A stretch of 64,000 nucleotides of DNA from Anaeramoeba ignava BMAN. Its lineage: Eukaryota; Protista; Anaeramoebae. A model generated the notes under the pieces. The model was not told the origin of the DNA. It made no database searches and saw nothing but the letters and a program-made list of their open reading frames with translations. Both the position numbers and the translations under genes were made by a program. Location: positions 1 through 64,000 of the forward strand of contig JAPDFW010000144.1 in NCBI GenBank assembly GCA_028826165.1, given 5' to 3'. Positions 3,001-46,200 of the stretch are shown in pieces (the stretch's first letter is position 1; each line of letters starts with the position of its first letter).

Positions 3001-6000
3001 CTTGAAAATAACACAGAAAATAATATAAATAACAAAAATTTTCCTGAATGGACTTTAATGTTTAAAGAATTTTTTGATCATGAAAAGTTTTTAAAAAATA
3101 TTTATAAAGAAAAACCACCTCCAATTTGTCAATTTATAATTGAAGAAGAAGATATTTTTTATAAATATAAAGATCTATTTACATTTCCAATTATTGAACA
3201 TATTCAAAACTTAGAAATAACTAGATCAAATTTAGATTGTGGATTTGAGCTAATTTATATTATTATTAATTGGAAAATCAAATCAAATGAGAAAGAAAAA
3301 GACTTAAAAAATATTATGGAAATTGAATCAAATTTACAAAAACAAACACAATTAAATGAAAAATATGATGCAATTATTTTCCATAAATTGAATAAATTAA
3401 TATTTAATTTTCTAATAAAGGAAAGATCTTTTAAAAGAGATATTAACAGATGGTTTGATTTGATTGAGAAATCTTTTGAAGGATGGGCTAATATTTCTAT
3501 TTCATTTCCAGATATTATTGGTAATTTTCCAAATGAAAATAATCCATTCCTTTGGCTTTCAAATACAGTTATAACAATTTTATGTATTTTAAGTAAACAT
3601 CAACCAATATCATTTCTACTTAAAAATGGGAAAGAATTAGCAGCTTTTCTGAATACAATACTTATTACAGAAAATAAAGAAATTGTTATAAAAGTTTGTT
3701 ATTTACTAAAAAACTTACTTAAACAAATAACAAATTCTAGTAAACAAAAAAATCAAAATCAAAATCAACAAAATTATAACGATAATGATATGCGAAAATT
3801 TTCAATGACTCTTAAGCAAATTATTCAAGTTATCGAGAAAAAAGTTGCACCAAATACAGATCCAAGAACAAACATCAGAAAATTATTTGGAGTTTCAGAA
3901 TTCTTTAGAACTGTTTATTATCAAATTCCAAACTATCTTGATCAACATTTACCAGATTTACTTTTATATTTTGAACAAGTGATTGTTGTTCATATTGATC
4001 ATGTTAAGAAACCTATTAATATTAATGAAGAATCACAAAATGATGTTGTGAATAGTATTCGCGATTGTTTTTTCATGTTGTCTTTTAGAATAAATAATTT
4101 TCCTTATTTAAGAAAAAGATTTTTAAGAGGAGTAAGAAAAATTATACTTCAATGTGGAGATTTTGGGTTAATATTTGATGTTTTCAAAGTTATTAAAAAT
4201 TGGATAATTGATAAAAATCTGAATGAAAATCAAAACGAAAATAAGATATTTGAAGATTCTTTTAAAACTAAAGATCCAGAAAAACTTCAAAAAATTACAG
4301 GATGGGAAAATTTCCATGATCGTATTAATATCTCTTTAACATTGGAAGAAAAACTTAAATTTATCAGTGATTTTACAGCAGCTTATCGAAATATAGAAAT
4401 TAGAAATAATCCAAATAACCCAGAATTACATCAATTAATTTTTGAAATATTGTTAGAATGTTCTAAATTGGATTATATAGAAAATACAGATATTTTTTTA
4501 GAACAAATATTATATCTTGGATTTGTTTCTCAAAACAAAAAAACAAAAGATCAATTTTTCCAAATTATTCATCAAAAAATGCCAAAGAATACATTAAGAG
4601 AAAGAATATTATTTGTAATTTTAAGTGATATTTGGAAACCTAAAATACCAACTTGGATTAATGAAATATTGAAATTATCAATTAGTTTATATGATCCAGA
4701 AGCTCTTTGTCTAGGATCAATTTTCACATTTTTTAAAAAGAAAGAAATTAATAATGAATTTAATGATTTGCAAATTAATGCTAAAGTTATGGAAGAAAAA
4801 ATACAAAAATTGTTATTTATTATTCCAGATCGGAAATATTTAAAAATACGAGAATTAATTGAACCAATAATTGATTTAATTGACGAAGAACCACAAATGA
4901 TTCAAGCTTTATGGCCAAGTTTATTTTCACAATTCTGGGGAAATATTTTAAATAATGATGAAGAAAGAAGAAAAGTTGCAGTTTCTCTTGTTGATTTTCT
5001 TTTGAAAGAATCATATACTATTAATCGAGATCTTTGCAAAGTAATATTAGATGGATTTTTATATTCAGAACCACGTGTTAGAATATCAATCCAAAAAATC
5101 AAAAACATTGCAAAACAATTTGGACATTGGTATATTGCTGTTGCTATGATGGAAGCATATCATTCAAAATCAGTAGGATTATTAACACATGCGAAAAACA
5201 TTCGAGAAGTTGAAGAAATTGATGAAGCAAACTGCGAGTTATCTGTGATGTTTATGCAACTTGGAGAGATAGATTTGATGTATGGATTGTGGGATATGAT
5301 ATCTGTTAATCAAGAAACAAAACAAGGAATAGCGTTTGTTCAACATGGAATGTGGAAACAAGCTCAAGAATATTTTCTTAAATCAATGGGGAAAGTTGAA
5401 TCTAAATTTGCAGAAAACAATCCAGGAAAAGGAGAACTTGGATTCTCTGAAGAGCAGTGGATTTATTGCTCACAAATAATTGGAGATTATTCAACTCTTC
5501 TTGGATTTTCAGAAAAAATAAATCATTCAGAATTATTGTTGGATTCAGCATGGAATTTGGGGAAATTGAAACATATAGCACGAGCATTAAAACAAAATTC
5601 ACAAACATTGGAAAGAGCTCAACAATTATTATATCAAGGATATTTGTTTTATACTCAAATTAATTTGAATATTATTGAAGCTAAATTTAAAAATTTTGTT
5701 AGAAATCCAATACAAAGTAATTTGAATGAACAAACTACATTTGAAAGCATAAATCAAAATCGAAATTTCCAAAAATCATTTCTCTTTAAAAAATCAACAA
5801 GTGAAAATGATATTAGTAATTTAAAAACAGTTGTAGATCAAGAAAATTCAAATAATCCAAATACAAATGAAGAACGTCCAACAAGAAAAATTTCTTTTTG
5901 GGATGAAGAAAATGCAAATAATAAAACAAACTCAGTAAATCAAGAATCTAAAGAAAATCATAATACAAATAAAAATTTGAATGGATATCAAACAAAAATA

Positions 6001-8916
6001 GAAACTGATGAAAATGAGAAACAAAGAATAATCAAAACAAAACAAAAAATGAGAAGATTTGATTCTTTTGAAACTTTTGAATTTGAATCACTAAGTGATA
6101 TTATTCATTTAAAAGCTGCTTATCAAGAAGGAATTTTGTATTTAATTACTGAATGGGATACATTACCTAAAAATTTAAGCAATTTACATATTAGATTTCT
6201 CCAAAAATTTCAACCATTTATTGAATTTTTTGAATCAATCAAAGTATTTAAAATTATCAAAAATTCATTAGAAAATAACACAAAAACAGAAATGGAACAT
6301 TTTCTTACAATGTGGAAAAACAGAATTCCAGATATTCATGAAGAATTATCGATTTGGAATAATTTATTTGTTTGGAGATTTCATATATTTGGGAATATTG
6401 AAAGAGTTTCCAAATTTAATATTCACAACAAATTTGAAAATATGGCAATTTATCAATCAGCAAAAGCATTAATTTTGATTGCGAAAATTTTTAGAAAACA
6501 AGGATTACCAAATAATGGAATTAGATATTTAGATCGAATCCATACCTTCTCGATTGTAACAACAAATGATATGTTTCAAAATTTAAAAGAAAAAACCAAA
6601 TGTTGTTTAGAAGTTCCAAATCGAATTCCAGAATTTCTTCAATTTCTAAATGATGATCAATTAAATAATTTTCCAGATCATAATCAAAGATCAACTTTGA
6701 AAAGATGTCAAGCAGAATTATATTCCAAACTTTCATTTTTTCAAGAAGCCAATGAAAAATTTTATCAAAGTACAAAAATATCTCAATTTGTTGGAAGTAA
6801 TTGGAAAGCATGGGGTAAATTTTGTGATCAAATGTGGAAAAAAACCAAGAATATTTCTTGGGTTAAAGAAGCAATAAAAAATTACATTCAAACTATGATA
6901 TTTGGAGAAGATAAACAAGCTGATATTGCACCAAGAATTATTTATCTATCAAGATATGAAAACATGAGTGATGAAAACATTCCTCGATTATTAATAAATG
7001 ATACACCTATTTATGTTTGGGTTATTTGGATACCACAATTAATTTCAGAAATTATTCAAAGAAATCACATTCCTATCTACAAGAATTTATTAGCTAAAAT
7101 ATCGTTGGTTTATCCGCAAGCTGTTTATTATCATCTCCGTTCATCAATTCAACAAATTTTATCTCTTGAAAAATTGGGAATTTTGGAAATAAATTTGATT
7201 ATTAGAGCGTTAAATGATATTATGAAATATTTGAAACAAAATGAAATTATAAAGAAAAAAATGTCTAAGAAGACAAATTTTGAAGAATCATCAACAGAAC
7301 AAATTGATAATATTATTCGATCTGTAATTTCAAATTTCCAATCAACACTTTCTGATGAATGTTTAAATGATTTAGATAAAATTTATTATAAAATTATTAA
7401 TTCATGTGAGACATTTGATGGTTTCATTTCTTTAGAAGATATTCAAGAAGTCATTAAGAAATATTCACAAGAAAAGTCATTAAAGGAGATTTTTGAATTT
7501 TCAGAAATTATAAAATTAGAGAAAAAGAACCCAGAATTATCAAAAATTAAAGTATCTGAAATCCGAGATATAATTAGAGCAACTACAGCTTCTCTTCGAA
7601 GATTATTCAGATCAAATATGGAGAATAAATATGTTGAAGATTTTGATTTTGCACTTTCACAAAGTAGATTTGAAGATAATATTGAAGTTCCAGGTCAATA
7701 TTTAGAACCTAATTTTTACATTGATAAACATCGAAAAATTTATTGTATTCATCCTGAATTTCAATCAATAATGAAATCAAATGTTGTATTTCGCAAGATT
7801 AAATTTGTTGATAATTGTGGAGATTTTCATGATTTTATTGTTGAAAGAATGAGTTATTTGGATTCGAGATCTGAGGAAAGAGTTATACAATTTATGCGTA
7901 TTCTGAATATTCATTTGGATAAATATTATCAAACTAAAAAAAGAGGAATTAAGTTTACATTACCAGTTATTTTACCATTAACAAAAGATGTAAGAATTTT
8001 TAAAGGGATGAGTGATGTTGTATCGTTTTCCGAAGTTTGTGAAGATTATTTTTATCAGAAAGGAATATATTTTGAAAATCCCATTATATATCATTTTAAT
8101 AAGATTAGCAAATTTAAAAAATTAGAAGAAAAATCAACAGAAAAAAATGAAATGAAGAAAAAACAATATTTGATGAAAATATTCCAAAAGATACAAAACA
8201 AATTTGTTCCTCCACCCTTATTCCATTTATTTATGTTTTCAATGTTTTCATCTGTTTATGAAACTTGGGTTTTTAGGAAGCAATTTACAATACAACATGG
8301 ATTGAATTCTTTAATAAAATTTTTATTTAGTATTGAAGATAAGCCAATAAATAGGATTTATTTTGACAGAACATCAGGGAAATTGATTCATACAAGAATG
8401 AATATGAAAATTGAATCAGATGAATTACTTTATGAATATAAACCAAATGATGTTCCAATGAGATTAACACCAAATATTATTGGATTCATGTCAAATATTG
8501 GAGTTGAAGGAACATTTTCAGTTGTTTTAACTTGTTCTTCTCTTTGTTTTACTAAGAAAGAGTTTAGTTTAGAAAATTGTCTTAATTTAATTATTAAAGA
8601 TGAAATGTTTTCAAAAAGAATTGAAAAAGTTATTTCCAATGAAAATTATCAAACGAAAATAAGTAATTATAATCAAATTGATGATTATTTGATAATTGAT
8701 GAAAATTTTTTGGATAAAATGGAAAAAAATGTTGAAAAAATTCTTAATAGAATTAATTTACTTTCACCAAAAGAATCATTAGAAAATTTAAATCAAAATC
8801 AAAATCAAAATCAAAATCAAAAACCAATAAATTGGTATGCAAAAGAATTAATATATCATTGTTCAAATATTGAGAATATTTCATTAATTAAACCTAACTT
8901 TTTTCCTTGGTTTTGA
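2..8916 (+). CDS. TRRAP: TRRAP/Tra1-like PIKK pseudokinase (5' end outside the window; about 5 apparent frameshifts between ~1330 and ~2235)
   Basis: Very long HEAT/FAT-like ORF with FAT motifs (QHGMWKQAQ, WKNRIPD..E.LSIWNNLFVWR, VWIPQL, YPQAVYYHLR), a PI3K-like domain (RSEERVIQF, VPMRLTPNI) lacking the catalytic DRH/DFG residues, and a FATC end (..PNFFPWF*). The frame is open from base 2 and continues across homopolymer indels. Confidence 0.9.
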
Positions 8917-23068: not shown

Positions 23069-23878
23069 TTAATCATTTTGTTCAATTATCGTCTCATTCC
23101 TTTTTTTTGCCCAAGGATTTTTTTCCAAAAACTCTTCAATAGCTTGACGAAGACAAATATTTGGATGAAATTGGTCTTTATTAATAGGAATTCTTGTTAT
23201 TGGATCTTGATTACCACCTGAATCTATATAATTGAATATAGCATTTTTTTCATAAGAAACACCACTATTTCCAACAACAGGATCATTCATAATATCCAAC
23301 GAAATCGGACAACAAAAATAGGAAGGGATTTCTGGCCTTTTTGGTTGGATTTTCTCGAAAAAAATTTGGAGTTCTGACATTTTGTCTTGAATATCAAGAA
23401 CATTTTTTGAATTTTGATTTCTCAAACGAATCAATTCATCCAAATATTGAAAAAGATTATTTTTTGTTTTTTCCAAATAGTTTTTTTCCTGATTTTCATT
23501 CTCTTGGAAAAGTAAGAGTTCAACTTCATCGATTTTCCCTTTCAATTCTTGGATCCAAGTCGCTTTTTCCTTTTCTGAAAGACGAAGCGAAGTTTTAAGT
23601 GATTCCAATGCATTTTTATATTGTTTTTTTCCTGATAAAGCTAATCCTCGAAAATAGTGTGCTTTTATTGAAGAATGATTAAATTGCAAAACTGCTTCGC
23701 AATCTGATAAACTTTTATCATATTCTAATATTTTAATTTGTGAAAGTGCTCTATTAAGATATAAAACTTCTCTTAAATTTTGATCGGGATGTGAATTTAA
23801 TCCAAATGTATAAAAATTAATTGCTTGTTCGAATTGATTTGATCTAAAAAATTCATTTCCTTTTTCTTTAAATTCCAT
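23069..23878 (-). CDS. TPR + U-box E3 ubiquitin ligase (CHIP/STUB1-like)
   Basis: Three TPRs (KEKGNEFF..A..Y, YLNRA, IKAHYFRG) and a U-box (IPSYFCCPISLDIMNDPV..SGVSYE..DPITR..PN..LRQAIEEF). Confidence 0.9.
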   Translation of the reverse strand: MEFKEKGNEFFRSNQFEQAINFYTFGLNSHPDQNLREVLYLNRALSQIKILEYDKSLSDCEAVLQFNHSSIKAHYFRGLALSGKKQYKNALESLKTSLRLSEKEKATWIQELKGKIDEVELLLFQENENQEKNYLEKTKNNLFQYLDELIRLRNQNSKNVLDIQDKMSELQIFFEKIQPKRPEIPSYFCCPISLDIMNDPVVGNSGVSYEKNAIFNYIDSGGNQDPITRIPINKDQFHPNICLRQAIEEFLEKNPWAKKRNETIIEQND

Positions 23879-24181: not shown

Positions 24182-26442
24182 TTAAATTTTTGGATTTTGT
24201 GATAATTTTCCCTTAAGAGATAATAAAGATTGTTGAATTTTATCGAAATCAAAAGAAGGAACATGATAATATTCTGTTTTTAAATGGATTGCTTTTCTGA
24301 TAAAATGATAATAAGGAAGAACAACACTAAGATGATAATTCAATTCAAGTGAACCGAGTCCAGTGGGTATTTTTGGATAAGCAAATAATTCTTGTAACGA
24401 ATTGAGAATTTTTTCTGATTCTCCAAAATCCTTATTATCAATTGCTTTTCGAATATCTTTCTCTAATTTTTCAAATTGTTTGTGTTGATTATCTCCATAA
24501 TAATAAAACTCATTCAAACGTTCAAATGGTGAAACAACTTTGGAAATTTCGCTTAAATTCACCACTTCTATCTTTCCAGTTCTTACACTGATGCTTCCTT
24601 CGTGCAAAGGATTTTCTGTTGTACTAGTTTCTGCTTTCACTTTGAATTTGTATTCAGTATCTGGTACTAAATTTTGAAATGTTAATATTCGAGTTTCTTT
24701 TCCTTGACCTATTTTTTGAATCATTCGTGGTGCTTTTGGTTTAATTTGAGCAGTAATTTTGGGATTACGTCGCCATATCATTTTGGATTCAAATGCCAAT
24801 TTCAAAGTGATTGTTGTTGGATCATCTTTATTTTCCTGATTTTTAAATTATTTTTAAATTTTAATTTTAAATTTAATTTTAATTTTAAATTTAAATTATT
24901 TTTATTCCACAAACTTGAGTAAGTGTAAATTCACAAGATGCGCCTTCATCTATAAAATATATAAAATTTATAAAATTTAAAAAAATAAATATAAATATTT
25001 AAAAAAATAAATATATAAATATAAATATAGTTATGATTTTTGTTGTAGATTATATTTTCACAAACCATCATGAACCTGGGGTGGGAAAAGATGTTTTTTA
25101 TCAGCAGGCTAGAAAATAGTAATAAAGAAATGAATTAATTTTCTTACTAAAAATAAATAACAATAAATTACAATCTATTATGAGTTATTTATTAAGAATT
25201 AACCTTTCATTCTTTTAAAAAAAATTAAAATAAATTTACTTTCTAAGAAATATAAATATTATTTATAAATTTAAAATATTTTGATAAATAAAAAAAATAC
25301 AATTCTGTTTATATTCCATGTATTTTTTTCATCTTTGGTATTAAATATATCGAAAATTTTTTTAGAAATGCTTAATGTTAAATCATTACGAAAAACTACA
25401 TAATCGTAAGGAGTTTTTTGCTAAATTTTTATACAAATAAGAATAAATTAGAAAAATATAATTTTTGGGAAATAATTATTTACTTTCTATTTTAGTAATA
25501 ATAACAATTAAAATTAAAATTCATTTATAAAATTAAAATTCATTTATAAAATTAAAATTAAAATTAATTTACTTCCTAAAATTAAATGTAAAATTAAATG
25601 TAAAATTAAATGTAAAATTAAATGTAAAATTAAATGTAAAATTAAATGTAAAATTAAATGTAAAATTAAAATTAAATTCATTTACATCCTCAGCATTTCT
25701 ATCAGCCCCTTCTTTAATAAGTAATTCAATAATTTCAGGTGATGAATTCATACAAGCAAGATGTAAACAAGTCACTTTCTAGCACATTAAAAAAAACGAT
25801 TACTCTTAATTTAATAACTTAAAAAAAAAAAGAGGAAAAAAAAATTTTACATCCTAAAAAAAAATTAATAAAAAAATTTTTTAATTAAAAAAAGGAAAAA
25901 AAAAATTTACAATTTCATAATTATAATTTGCTTTATAACTTAATAAAAGTTTAACTATTTCTAATCTGGGGTCATTTTCTGGAGTTTTTTGTTGGTCTGT
26001 TTCATTATTTTTATTATTATCATCTTTATCATCTTTATCATCTTCATCATCTTTATCATCTTCATCTTTATTATTATCATTATTATTATCATTATTATTA
26101 TTATTTTCATTTTTTTGAGTATCTTGAACTGGACTAATATCATAATCTGAAATTAATCCAAAATCATCTGGTGTTGCCAAAAGTTCATAAAGAAAAGAAG
26201 TTGCTAATTTTTGCTAAAAAAAGAAAAAGCAAAATTTGTAAAAAAATTTGTAAAAAAATTTGTAAAAAAATTTGTAAAAAAATTTGTAAAAAAATTTGTT
26301 TGTTTTGTTTTTTTTTTTGTTTTATAAAAATATTCACATCCTGTATTCGTTGTTTGTAGTTTTCTATTTCTGACAAATTTTCCCAATTACATTGGATGAT
26401 ATCTTTTCTGAAATTATCAAGTTTTGAATCTTCTCCACTCAT
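24182..26442 (-). CDS. Ankyrin-repeat + FN3-like protein, 12 exons of which five are 3 nt long
   Basis: Exons: 26442-26338, 26213-25911, 25853-25851, 25778-25686, 25575-25573, 25486-25484, 25420-25301, 25242-25240, 25174-25172, 25108-25066, 24949-24915, 24835-24182. Ankyrin motifs are LEIVKLLLSYKAN and TCLHLAC..IIELLIKEGADRNAED..KTP. The FN3 motif is NLVPDTEYKFKVKA. Confidence 0.8.
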
Positions 26443-40045: not shown

Positions 40046-40118
40046 TGACGTTGCCAAGAGTCGAACTTGGGTCTTGAACGTGTAAAGTTCACGTGCTCAA
40101 CCGTTACACTACAACATC
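40046..40118 (-). tRNA. tRNA-Val(TAC), intact and intronless
   Basis: GATGTTG-TA-GTGT..GCAC-G-TGAAC-TTTACAC-GTTCA-AGAC-CCAAG-TTCGACT-CTTGG-CAACGTC-A folds into a cloverleaf and is followed by a TTTTT Pol III terminator. Confidence 0.97.
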
Positions 40119-43100
40119 TTTTTAATTTAAATTTAAATTTAAATTTGTTATTTTAATTTTTTAAAAATAAATATATTTAAATTAATTATTAAAATTATTT
40201 TATTAAATTTATATTAATAATTTTAATAATATTATATTAATATTTATAAATAAATTTAAATAAAATAATATAAATATAAATAAATATATTATTAAATATA
40301 TATTTAATTTAATTTATTAATTTAATAAATTTTATTCCACTTTTTATTTATTTAATCATTTAAATATAAATATATAAATAAATAAATATAAATATAAAGT
40401 TCACGTGCTCAACCGTTACACTACAACATCTTTTTAATTTAAATTTAAATTTTAAATTTGTTATTTTAATTTTTAAAAATAAATATATTTAAATTAATTA
40501 TTAAAATTAATTTATTAAATTTATATCAATAATTTTAATAATATTATATTATTATTTATAAATAAATTTAATTAAAATAATATAAATATAAATAAATATA
40601 TTATTAAATATATATTTAATTTAATTTATTAATTTAATAAATTATATTCCACTTTTTATTTATTTAATCATTTAAATATAAATAAAAATATAAATAAATA
40701 AATATAAATAATTCAAATTTAAATTTTAAATTTGTTTTTAATTTTTAAAAATAAATATATTTAAATAAATTATTAAAATTATTTTATTAAATTTATATCA
40801 ATAATTTTAATAATAATATATTAATATTTATAAATAAATTTAAATAAAATAATATAGATATAAATAAATATATTATTAAATATATATTTAATTTAATTTA
40901 TTAATTTAATAAATTTTATTCACTTTTTATTTATTTAATCATTTTAAATAAATAAATAAATAAAATAAATAAATAAATAAATAAATAAATATAAATAAAT
41001 AAATAAATAAATAAATAAATATAAATATAAAGTTCACGTGCTCAACCGTTACACTACAACATCTTTTTTAATTTAAATTTAAATTTTAAATTTGTTATTT
41101 TAATTTTTAAAAATAAATATATTTAAATAAAATATTAAAATTATTTTATTAAATTTATATTAATAATTTTAATAATATTATATTAATATTTATAAATAAA
41201 TTTAATTAAATAATATAAATATAAATAAATATATTATTAAATATATATTTAATTTAATTTATTAATTTAATAAATTATATTCCACTTTTTATTTATTTAA
41301 TCATTTAAATATAAATATAAATATAAATAAATATAAATATAAAGTTCACGTGCTCAACCGTTACACTACAACATCTTTTTAATTTAAATTTAAATTTAAA
41401 TTTGTTATTTTAATTTTTTAAAAATGAATATATTTAAATAAAATATTAAAATTATTTTATTAAATTTATATTAATAATTTTAATAATATTATATTAATAT
41501 TTATAAATAAATTTAAATAAAATATATAAATATAAATAAATATATTATTAAATATATATTTAATTTAATTTATTAATTTAATAAATTATATTCCACTTTT
41601 TATTTATTTAATCATTTAAATATAAATATAAATAAATATAAATAAATATATAAATAAATATAAATATAAAGTTCACGTGCTCAACCGTTACACTACAACA
41701 TCTTTTTAATTTAAATTTAAATTTTAAATTTGTTATTTTAATTTTTTAAAAATAAATATATTTAAATTAAATTATTAAAATTATTTTAATAAATTTATAT
41801 TAATAATTTTAATAATATTATATTAATATTTATAAATAAATTTAAATAAATATATAAATATAAATAAATATATTATTAAATATATATTTAATTTATTTTA
41901 TTAATTTGATAAATTATATTCCACTTTTTATTTATTTAATCATTTAAATAAATAAATAAATATAAATAAATAAATAAATATAAAGTTCACGTGCTCAACC
42001 GTTACACTACAACATCTTTTTAATTTAAATTTTAAATTTGTTATTTTAATTTTTAAAAATAAATATATTTAAATTAATTATTAAAATTATTTTAATAAAT
42101 TTTATATTAATAATTTTAATAATATTATATTAATATTTATAAATATATTTAAATAAATAATATAAAATATATATAAATAAATATATTATTAAATATATAT
42201 TTAATTTAATTTATTAATTTAATAAATTTTATTCCACTTTTTATTTATTTAATCATTTAAATATAAATAAATATAAATAAATATAAATAAATAAATAAAT
42301 ATAAAGTTCACGTGCTCAACCGTTACACTACAACATCTTTTTAATTTAAATTTTAAATTTAAAATTTGTTATTTTAATTTTTTAAAAATAAATATATTTA
42401 AATAAAATATTAAAATTATTTTAATAAATTTATATTAATAATATTAATAATAATATATTAATATTTATAAATAAATTTAATTAAAATAATATAAATAAAA
42501 ATAAATATATTATTAAATATATATTTAATTTAATTTATTAATTTAATAAATTTTATTCCACTTTTTATTTATTTAATCATTTAAATATAAATATAAATAT
42601 AAATAAATAAATAAATATAAATATAAAGTTCACGTGCTCAACCGTTACACTACAACATCTTTTTAATTTAAATTTAAATTTTAAATTTGTTATTTTAAAT
42701 TTTTAAAAATAAATATATTTAAATAAAATATTAAAATTAATTTAATAAATTTATATTAATAATTTTAATAACATTATATTAATATTTATAAATAAATTTA
42801 ATTAAAAATATATAAATATAAATAAATTTATTATTAAATATATATTTAATTTAATTTATTAATTTAATAAATTATATTCCACTTTTTATTTATTTAATCA
42901 TTTAAATATAAATAAATATAAATAAATAAATATAAATAAATGTAAAGTTCACGTGCTCAACCGTTACACTACAACATCTTTTTAATTTAAATTTAAATTT
43001 TAAATTTGTTATTTTAATTTTTTAAAAATAAATATATTTAAATTAATTATTAAAATTATTTTAATAAATTTATATTAATAATATTAATAATAATATATTA

Positions 43101-46100
43101 TTATTTATAAATAAATTTAAATAAATAATTTAAATAAAAATAAATATATTATTAAATATATATTTAATTTATTTTATTAATTTAATAAATTTTATTCCAC
43201 TTTTTATTTATTTAATCATTTAAATATAAATAAATATAAATAAATAAATATAAATAAATGTAAAGTTCACGTGCTCAACCGTTACACTACAACATCTTTT
43301 TAATTTAAATTTGTTATTTAAATTTGTTATTTTAATTTTTAAAAATAAATATATTTAAATAAAATATTAAAATTAATTTTAATAAATTTATATTAATAAT
43401 TTTAATAATATTATATTATTATTTATAAATAAATTTAATTAAATAATATAAATAAAAATAAATATATTATTAAATATATATTTAATTTAATTTATTAATT
43501 TAATAAATTTTATTCCACTTTTTATTTATTTAATCATTTAAATATAAATAAATATAAATAAATAAATAAATATAAATATAAAGTTCACGTGCTCAACCGT
43601 TACACTACAACATCTTTTTAATTTAAATTTAAATTTTAAATTTGTTATTTTAATTTTTTAAAAATAAATATATTTAAATAAAATATTAAAATTATTTTAA
43701 TAAATTTATATTAATAATATTAATAATATTATATTAATATTTATAAATAAATTTAAATAAATAATATAAATAGAAATAAATATATTATTAAATATATATT
43801 TAATTTAATTTATTAATTTAATAAATTATATTCCACTTTTTATTTATTTAATCATTTAAATATAAATATAATTAAATATAAATATAAATAAATATAAATA
43901 AATATAAAGTTCACGTGCTCAACCGTTACACTACAACATCTTTTTATTTTAAATTTAAATTTTAAATTTGTTATTTTAATTTTTTAAAAATAAATATATT
44001 TAAATTAAATATTAAAATTATTTTAATAAATTTATATTAATAATTTTAATAATATTATATTAATATTTATAAATAAATTTAATTAAATAATTTAAATATA
44101 AATAAATATATTATTAAATATATATTTAATTTATTTTATTAATTTAATAAATTTTATTCCACTTTTTATTTATTTAATCATTTAAATATAAATAAATATA
44201 AATAAATATAAATAAATAAATGTAAAGTTCACGTGCTCAACCGTTACACTACAACATCTTTTTAATTTAAATTTAAATTTTAAATTTGTTATTTTAATTT
44301 TTTAAAAATAAATATATTTAAATAAATTATTAAAATTATTTTAATAAATTTATATTAATAATATTAATAATATTATATTAATATTTATAAATAAATTTAA
44401 ATTAAATAATATAAATAAAAATAAATATATTATTAAATATATATTTAATTTAATTTATTAATTTAATAAATTATATTCCACTTTTTATTTATTTAATCAT
44501 TTAAATATAAATAAATATAAATAAATAAATATAAATAAATAAATAAATATAAATATAAAGTTCACGTGCTCAACCGTTACACTACAACATCTTTTTAATT
44601 TAAATTTAAATTTAAATTTGTTATTTTAATTTTTTAAAAATAAATATATTTAAATAAAATATTAAAATTAATTTAATAAATTTATATTAATAATTTTAAT
44701 AATATTATATTATTATTTATAAATAAATTTAAATTAAATAATATAAATAAAAATAAATATATTATTAAATATATATTTAATTTAATTTATTAATTTAATA
44801 AATTATATTCCACTTTTTATTTATTTAATCATTTAAATATAAATAAATATAAATAAATAATATAAATAAATAAATAAATATAAATATAAAGTTCACGTGC
44901 TCAACCGTTACACTACAACATCTTTTTAATTTAAATTTAAATTTGTTATTTTAATTTTTTAAAAATAAATATATTTAAATAAAATTATTAAAATTAATTT
45001 AATAAATTTATATTAATAATTTTAATAATATTATATTAATATTTATAAATAAAAATTTAATTAAATAATATAAATATAAATAAATATATTATTAAATATA
45101 TATTTAATTTAATTTATTAATTTAATAAATTTTATTCCACTTTTTATTTATTTAATCATTTAAATATATATAAATATATATAAATATAAATATAAATAAA
45201 TAAATAAATATAAAGTTCACGTGCTCAACCGTTACACTACAACATCTTTTTAATTTAAATTTAAATTTTAAATTTGTTATTTTAATTTTTTAAAAATAAA
45301 TATATTTAAATAAAATATTAAAATTAATTTTAATAAATTTATATTAATAATTTTAATAATATTATATTATTATTTATAAATAAATTTAAATAAATAATAT
45401 ATAAATAAAAATAAATATATTATTAAATATATATTTAATTTAATTTATTAATTTAATAAATTATATTCCACTTTTTATTTATTTAATCATTTAAATATAA
45501 ATAAATATAAATATATAAATATAAATATAAAGTTCACGTGCTCAACCGTTACACTACAACATCTTTTTAATTTAAATTTAAATTTAAATTTAAATTTGTT
45601 ATTTTAATTTTTAAAAATAAATATATTTAAATAAAATATTAAAATTATTTTAATAAATTTATATTAATAATTTTAATAATATTATATTATTATTTATAAA
45701 TAAATTTAATTAAATAATATAAAATAAAAATAAATATATTATTAAATATATATTTAATTTAATTTAATTTATTAATTTAATAAATTTTATTCCACTTTTT
45801 TTATTTATTTAATCATTTAAATATAAATAAATATAAATAAATAAATAAATATAAATATAAATATAAAGTTCACGTGCTCAACCGTTACACTACAACATCT
45901 TTTTAATTTAAATTTAAATTTAAATTTGTTATTTTAATTTTTTAAAAATAAATATATTTAAATAAAATATTAAAATTATTTTAATAAATTTATATTAATA
46001 ATATTAATAATATTATATTAATATTTATAAATAAATTTAATTAAATAATATAAATAAAAATAAATATATTATTAAATATATATTTAATTTAATTTATTAA

Positions 46101-46200
46101 TTTGATAAATTTTATTCCACTTTTTTTTATTTAATCATTTAAATTTAAATATAAAAATAAATATAAATAAATATAAATAATTCAAATCAAATTTAAATTT
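40119..46200 (-). repeat. ~320 bp tandem array, about 19 units, 17 of which carry the 5' half of tRNA-Val
   Basis: The tRNA position-1 G of each half lies at 40430, 41063, 41375, 41702, 42016, 42337, 42659, 42978, 43296, 43614, 43940, 44258, 44591, 44922, 45246, 45563 and 45899. The unit near 40710 lacks the tRNA piece. Confidence 0.97.

Follow-up and report, generated by a model that had tools for sequence, protein, structure and literature searches.

We suggest that five triplets lying within the apparent introns of an ankyrin-repeat gene of Anaeramoeba ignava BMAN each represent a genuine one-codon spliceosomal exon, a reading that the arrangement of splice sites, the reading frame and the ankyrin repeat make probable. 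With these five codons the gene would, again in all probability, comprise 455 codons and combine ankyrin repeats with a fn3-like segment. One-codon exons appear to number in the thousands in the A. ignava genome, where the layout is most likely widespread.

The gene lies in a 64-kb stretch of A. ignava BMAN DNA with ~20% G+C (hereafter, the window). As read from the sequence and the list of open reading frames, it is composed of seven large exons on the minus strand, running from 26442 to 24182, and its product begins with acidic, N-rich sequence, continues with two to three ankyrin repeats and a weak fn3-like segment, and ends in a helical tail. Within the gene, the five motifs divide three apparent introns, 132, 265 and 192 nt long, into eight pieces, all of which have GT at the start and AG at the end. 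The parts of the gene, in the order of transcription and with the microexons as candidates, are as follows.

26338..26442, minus strand: exon 1, 35 codons, ATG at 26442 (sequence and ORF list)
26337-26214, minus strand: intron 1, 124 nt, after exon 1; contains the 12-nt tandem repeat caaattttttta x5
25911..26213, minus strand: exon 2, 101 codons; N/D/K-rich low-complexity sequence, then a degenerate first ankyrin repeat
25854..25910, minus strand: sub-intron a1, 57 nt, GTAAAT..TTTTAG
25851..25853, minus strand: putative microexon 1, GAT (Asp), ankyrin position 3 as deduced from the Pfam mapping of exon 3
25779..25850, minus strand: sub-intron a2, 72 nt
25686..25778, minus strand: exon 3, 31 codons (KVTCLH..NAED), ankyrin repeat, Ank positions 4-32
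25576..25685, minus strand: sub-intron b1, 110 nt; contains the 12-nt tandem repeat catttaatttta x8
25573..25575, minus strand: putative microexon 2, GAA (Glu), ankyrin position 2; architecture as in 12 loops of other genes
25487..25572, minus strand: sub-intron b2, 86 nt
25484..25486, minus strand: putative microexon 3, AAA (Lys), ankyrin position 3; architecture as in 12 loops of other genes
25421..25483, minus strand: sub-intron b3, 63 nt
25301..25420, minus strand: exon 4, 40 codons, starting QKTPYDY; degenerate, capping-like third repeat
25243..25300, minus strand: sub-intron c1, 58 nt, GTATTT..TCTTAG
25240..25242, minus strand: putative microexon 4, AAA (Lys), linker after the ankyrin part
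25175..25239, minus strand: sub-intron c2, 65 nt
25172..25174, minus strand: putative microexon 5, ATT (Ile), linker after the ankyrin part
25109..25171, minus strand: sub-intron c3, 63 nt
25066..25108, minus strand: exon 5, 43 nt, followed by a phase-1 intron (25065-24950)
24915..24949, minus strand: exon 6, 35 nt, followed by a 79-nt intron (24914-24836)
24182..24835, minus strand: exon 7, 217 codons plus stop; weak fn3-like segment, helical tail

The original prediction had placed five TAG-NNN-GTAA sites on the minus strand at 25853-25851, 25575-25573, 25486-25484, 25242-25240 and 25174-25172. The sequence was re-read and the observation of five such sites in the introns of one gene is confirmed, as are the predicted piece sizes of 57, 72, 110, 86, 63, 58, 65 and 63 nt. 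Phase 0 was found throughout, every junction falling on whole codons (..GAA ATT / AAA GTG.., ..GAG GAT / CAA AAA.. and ..AGA ATT / CCT GCT..), and the G rarity that had been described amounts to 5.9% G across the eight pieces. That these pieces (57–110 nt) are of normal intron size also holds, the published mode being 76 nt and the genome-wide spacing of such sites having a median of 71 nt. The A. ignava BMAN genome is 80.65% A+T, with 32,108 introns of modal length 76 nt, an intron G+C content of 8.1% and a minor spliceosome (PMC11550330).

The motif TAGNNNGTAA occurs five times in the 64-kb window, in each case at one of these sites, and not once on the plus strand. This total is ordinary, as shuffled sequences give 2.8±1.8. 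The placement, in turn, is non-random: 0.013 occurrences are expected in the 589 nt of the three apparent introns (Poisson P(≥5) ~3e-12). Each triplet has a 3' AG directly upstream and a 5' GT directly downstream, as a 3-nt spliceosomal microexon would have, and all five keep the frame and contain no stop (GAT, GAA, AAA, AAA and ATT), stop-free status being not significant by itself for just five triplets. On reading, no convincing isolated AG-NNN-GT sites were seen beside long exons in the window and in contig C2. One sequencing run, of unrecorded kind, contains the locus, with 0.53 of the locus words present, near the share for exons, a figure that hints at RNA but is no proof of it.

Agreement with the ankyrin repeat provides a second line of evidence. 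Exon 3 matches Pfam PF00023 (E = 2e-8, 34.5 bits against a cut-off of 21.1) over profile positions 4-32 of 33, and since it ends at position 32, four residues are needed before the next T-P. This gap is filled by E and K from microexons 2 and 3, together with Q and K from exon 4. Counted exon by exon from the per-exon Pfam mapping, the T-P period is 33 with E and K and 31 without them, in keeping with the earlier proposal that GAA and AAA restore the ankyrin spacing; the two codons fall at the beta-hairpin tip of the loop, on ankyrin positions 2 and 3. In the first loop, GAT corresponds to position 3, and position 2 is fused to exon 2, which ends in ..NYEI at that position. No Pfam domain above cut-off was found in exon 2 and no Pfam match at E ≤ 1 in exon 4, while the fn3 match of exon 7 has a Pfam E of 4.7e-4, below cut-off. 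Microexons 4 and 5 are without domain-spacing support, and it is motif statistics only that mark them as candidate exons.

Exon 7 is single copy, with one match in the whole A. ignava assembly, and against 1.84 billion representative proteins it gave weak fn3 matches only, with no orthologue and no self match. Relatives of the gene were not found in metagenome contigs either, and neither an orthologue nor a paralogue was detected across the representative proteins, the metagenome contigs and its own assembly. Searches with exon 7, the BTB exon and P0016 (the last two of ankyrin-BTB genes described below) did not find a transcript-derived protein of the target gene or of a paralogue, the latter two queries matching genome-based models only.

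Among its neighbours in the window, a TPR/U-box ORF (CHIP-like) has a transcript-derived counterpart in EukProt, an Anaeramoeba ignava protein with 98% identity. At the C-terminus of this ORF (window 23072-23100) EukProt has ..EKKSLGKKKE and the genome ..EKNPWAKKRNETIIEQND, a discrepancy of one base in an A run that is either a homopolymer error in one data set or a real variant. Elsewhere in the window, a tRNA-Val(TAC) gene on the minus strand (40046-40118) is followed, within 40046-46177, by a satellite of 19 units of ~318 bp each with 6% G+C, each unit carrying roughly the first 35 nt of the tRNA gene.

The paired arrangement recurs in other ankyrin genes of A. ignava. Three of them (L002, L003 and L004) contain at least eight loops that carry two AG-NNN-GT sites each, neither more nor fewer, placed along the repeat as in the target gene: a repeat exon extends to position 1, the one-codon exons would supply positions 2 and 3, and the next exon starts from position 4, with sub-introns of 56–95 nt. 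In the P0016 gene (G000:C64:1228621-1232346), each of four annotated introns (204–275 nt) carries exactly two AG-NNN-GT sites, which cut it into thirds of 57–103 nt. This makes 12 loops in four other ankyrin genes, each with two putative one-codon exons at positions 2-3. Judging from these gene structures, a repeat exon of ~31–33 codons followed by two predicted one-codon exons is the standard layout of a large A. ignava ankyrin family.

NCBI models of such genes are either two residues short per repeat or devoid of the ankyrin part. The distance from 'GA' to the 'H' of TPLH is 12 residues in nearly all of them, with the large exons alone, as against 14 residues, the ankyrin consensus, in the exon-continuous relatives A. 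flamelloides P0024 (continuous according to a three-exon map) and A. ignava P0027 (one open frame). A. ignava NCBI protein M0811_00429 (P0015) shows 100% identity to a BTB exon from contig C1; as a model it represents the L003 gene by its BTB exon alone.

In the genome, 122 places match the BTB part of P0016 and 62 match P0027 (E ≤ 1e-80), indicating that the ankyrin-BTB family is very large. Two layouts are seen in it, the ankyrin part being either split by microexons or continuous in one exon. In the A. flamelloides locus L027 ordinary exons encode the loops and spacing 3 shows no excess; the one-codon layout may thus be specific to A. ignava. At ~5390-5480 of L004 (G000:C1:1325390-1325480) an ankyrin exon switches frame midway (TPLPFMC versus KKEIIRYLISQGARIDARN), which reflects either a pseudogene or an assembly indel.

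Across the whole 42.8-Mb assembly, TAG-Nk-GTAA has 3,588 occurrences with k=3, as against 1,389 with k=2 and 784 with k=4, and an unselected 200-kb block has 27 sites at k=3 against 1–13 at fifteen other spacings (k=0-15). The k=3 sites form same-strand clusters with a median spacing of 71 nt (interquartile range 67–77). Clustered triplets (n=87) have a G+C content at codon positions 1/2/3 of.45/.26/.03 (P(GC1) = 1e-15), to be compared with.34-.45/.18-.30/.04-.17 in real A. ignava exons and.11 in introns, and true stops are absent from 86–87 clustered triplets where 7.5 are expected (P = 4e-4). Such a gradient, along with the absence of stops, is a mark of translated sequence, and this codon-like composition is the strongest indirect evidence that the triplets would reach mRNA.

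The scan that the original prediction called for, a search for enrichment at N=3, thus gave, by TAG-Nk-GTAA counts, an excess at spacing 3 only. Its broader idea, that splicing in this lineage may proceed codon by codon, gains support, for parts of genes, from the same excess, from the intron-sized spacing, from the stop-free, codon-like triplets and from the ankyrin spacing. Its expectation that gene predictors would overlook the exons also proved correct when tested on paralogues, with P0015 lacking the whole ankyrin part and each intron of P0016 hiding two sites.

We propose that each AT-rich piece of 57–110 nt (GTAA.. to ..TAG) would be a complete intron, recognised as a unit in the manner of intron definition. 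The 3' and 5' splice sites that stand 3 nt apart could not be occupied simultaneously, and neighbouring introns would therefore be removed one by one. After one removal the codon would be joined to the larger exon and form its end for the next removal. Being attached to the growing exon, the codon would be retained, such that any site used would keep its three bases. We infer from the sequence both that splicing follows this order and that mRNA contains the codons.

The same splice sites could be usable and the codons nonetheless serve as cassette exons that are mostly skipped, their inclusion being rare or conditional. We consider this unlikely. All the microexons are 3 nt long and in phase 0, so that the frame would survive skipping, and in the paralogues RNA-guided NCBI annotation passes straight from one large exon to the next, which counts against the microexons. 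However, exons of 3 nt are beyond the reach of short-read aligners and predictors, and these direct joins are uninformative enough to be weak counter-evidence. Skipping would leave every loop two residues short of both the consensus and the exon-continuous relatives, whereas codon-like composition and missing stops imply regular translation. Room for partial inclusion does exist in one ankyrin gene on the minus strand (L007, G000:C2:7000-9700), the loops of which carry 10, 8–10 and 4 putative one-codon exons and would be 1–7 residues over the ankyrin consensus if all were included. The first of these loops would read K-T-G-W-D-S-G-F-Y-D, and the introns between its one-codon exons are not clones.

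Regular inclusion of the five codons is thus the reading we prefer over skipping. A bolder idea, also improbable in our estimation, is that hairpin-tip one-codon exons and the runs of up to ~35 described below are cassettes combined variably, giving many loop variants per gene. By a similarly long shot, such variable use would let splicing act as a source of diversity in binding proteins, perhaps for recognising bacterial symbionts or prey.

Duplication has contributed to the pattern, as shown by the resemblance of a1 and a2 (local alignment z = 4.6); b2 and c2 are also weakly alike (z = 4–4.6). The tandem repeats in intron 1 and b1 show that intron length in the target gene changes by repeat expansion. 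Could the sites then be inert, produced when intron ends were duplicated in tandem or repeats expanded inside long introns, and never be used as exons? The likeness of a1 to a2, the repeats within b1 and intron 1 and the near-identical intron arrays found elsewhere would suit such an origin, but it leaves unexplained the GC1>GC2>GC3 gradient and the missing stops, the occurrence of exactly two sites per ankyrin loop at fixed repeat positions, and near-identical introns with variable triplets between them, and we rate it as very unlikely.

The array in question (L001, G000:C1:405001-415000, minus strand, locus ~4300-8130) has ~35 near-identical introns of ~72 nt (GTAAATAATT..AATAAATAG) with one triplet between each two neighbours; these triplets vary and include no stop. 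Upstream of the array are a BTB domain (Pfam E = 1e-18) and a coiled-coil exon, and two of its units have GC or AT in place of an initial GT. Conserved introns alongside varying triplets are not what plain tandem duplication would explain.

Finally, AG and GT might meet by chance in AT-rich introns, and the window total of five, inside the shuffle range, would agree with this. The idea is refuted by the site counts, namely the clustering (P ~3e-12) and the genome-wide excess at spacing 3 only, and has practically no probability left.

We therefore return to one-codon exons as the favoured explanation. We found no published description of such a layout in A. ignava, as predicted here from sequence: the terms 'microexon' and 'micro-exon' are absent from the text and 15 supplements of the genome paper (PMC11550330), and in a literature search runs of 3-nt exons turned up for no organism. 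Known 3-nt exons are rare single cases. If transcripts confirm the exons, this free-living protist assembles loops of its proteins one codon at a time, in pairs and in long runs, and offers a natural test of the limits of intron definition and of splice sites 3 nt apart. The published annotation would then be short of about one-tenth of introns, and a very large ankyrin-BTB family would be mis-stated, its models being truncated or two residues short per repeat. A role of tiny exons as combinatorial cassettes would also become testable.

Several known systems share individual aspects of this arrangement. Introners are dispersed, and are not set between successive codons. Near-identical intron copies, as produced by introner-like elements or tandem intron duplication, are a likeness seen elsewhere in the A. 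ignava genome, in the L001 array, and the eight sub-introns of the target gene are not clones of one another. In DARPins, the binding positions that are chiefly varied are repeat positions 2 and 3, at the hairpin tip; the A. ignava microexons would encode these positions too, a likeness that extends to position and no further.

The ratchet points of Drosophila (recursive splice sites) consist of AG abutting GT, retain nothing and serve very long introns. They resemble the sites described here in that 3' and 5' splice sites are juxtaposed in an apparent long intron, which points to stepwise removal. Unlike ratchet points, the A. ignava sites hold 3 nt that would be retained, and the pieces between them are of ordinary intron size; three bases separate AG from GT at all five sites, and spacing 0 is not enriched.

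The MEGs of Schistosoma have symmetric exons of 6–36 nt, long introns and secreted protein products. Here too, coding sequence would come largely from runs of symmetric tiny exons, and variation by exon choice has been proposed. The A. ignava exons differ in being 3 nt long and in belonging to loops of ankyrin, BTB and similar genes of intracellular type.

The closest parallels are the ultrashort microexons of animals and plants, among which are a 3-bp micro-exon of Drosophila homothorax (PMC7392893), plant microexons of 1–15 nt (PMC8831610) and a 1-nt exon of Arabidopsis (PMC4674806). These cases demonstrate that the spliceosome is able to retain 1–3 nt, and they share with the A. ignava candidates the canonical AG and GT flanks, a preserved frame and absence from annotation. 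However, they are isolated, usually located between long introns and few per genome, whereas the one-codon exons of A. ignava would occur in consecutive pairs and runs, between introns of ~70 nt, at fixed positions of a protein repeat, and apparently in their thousands.
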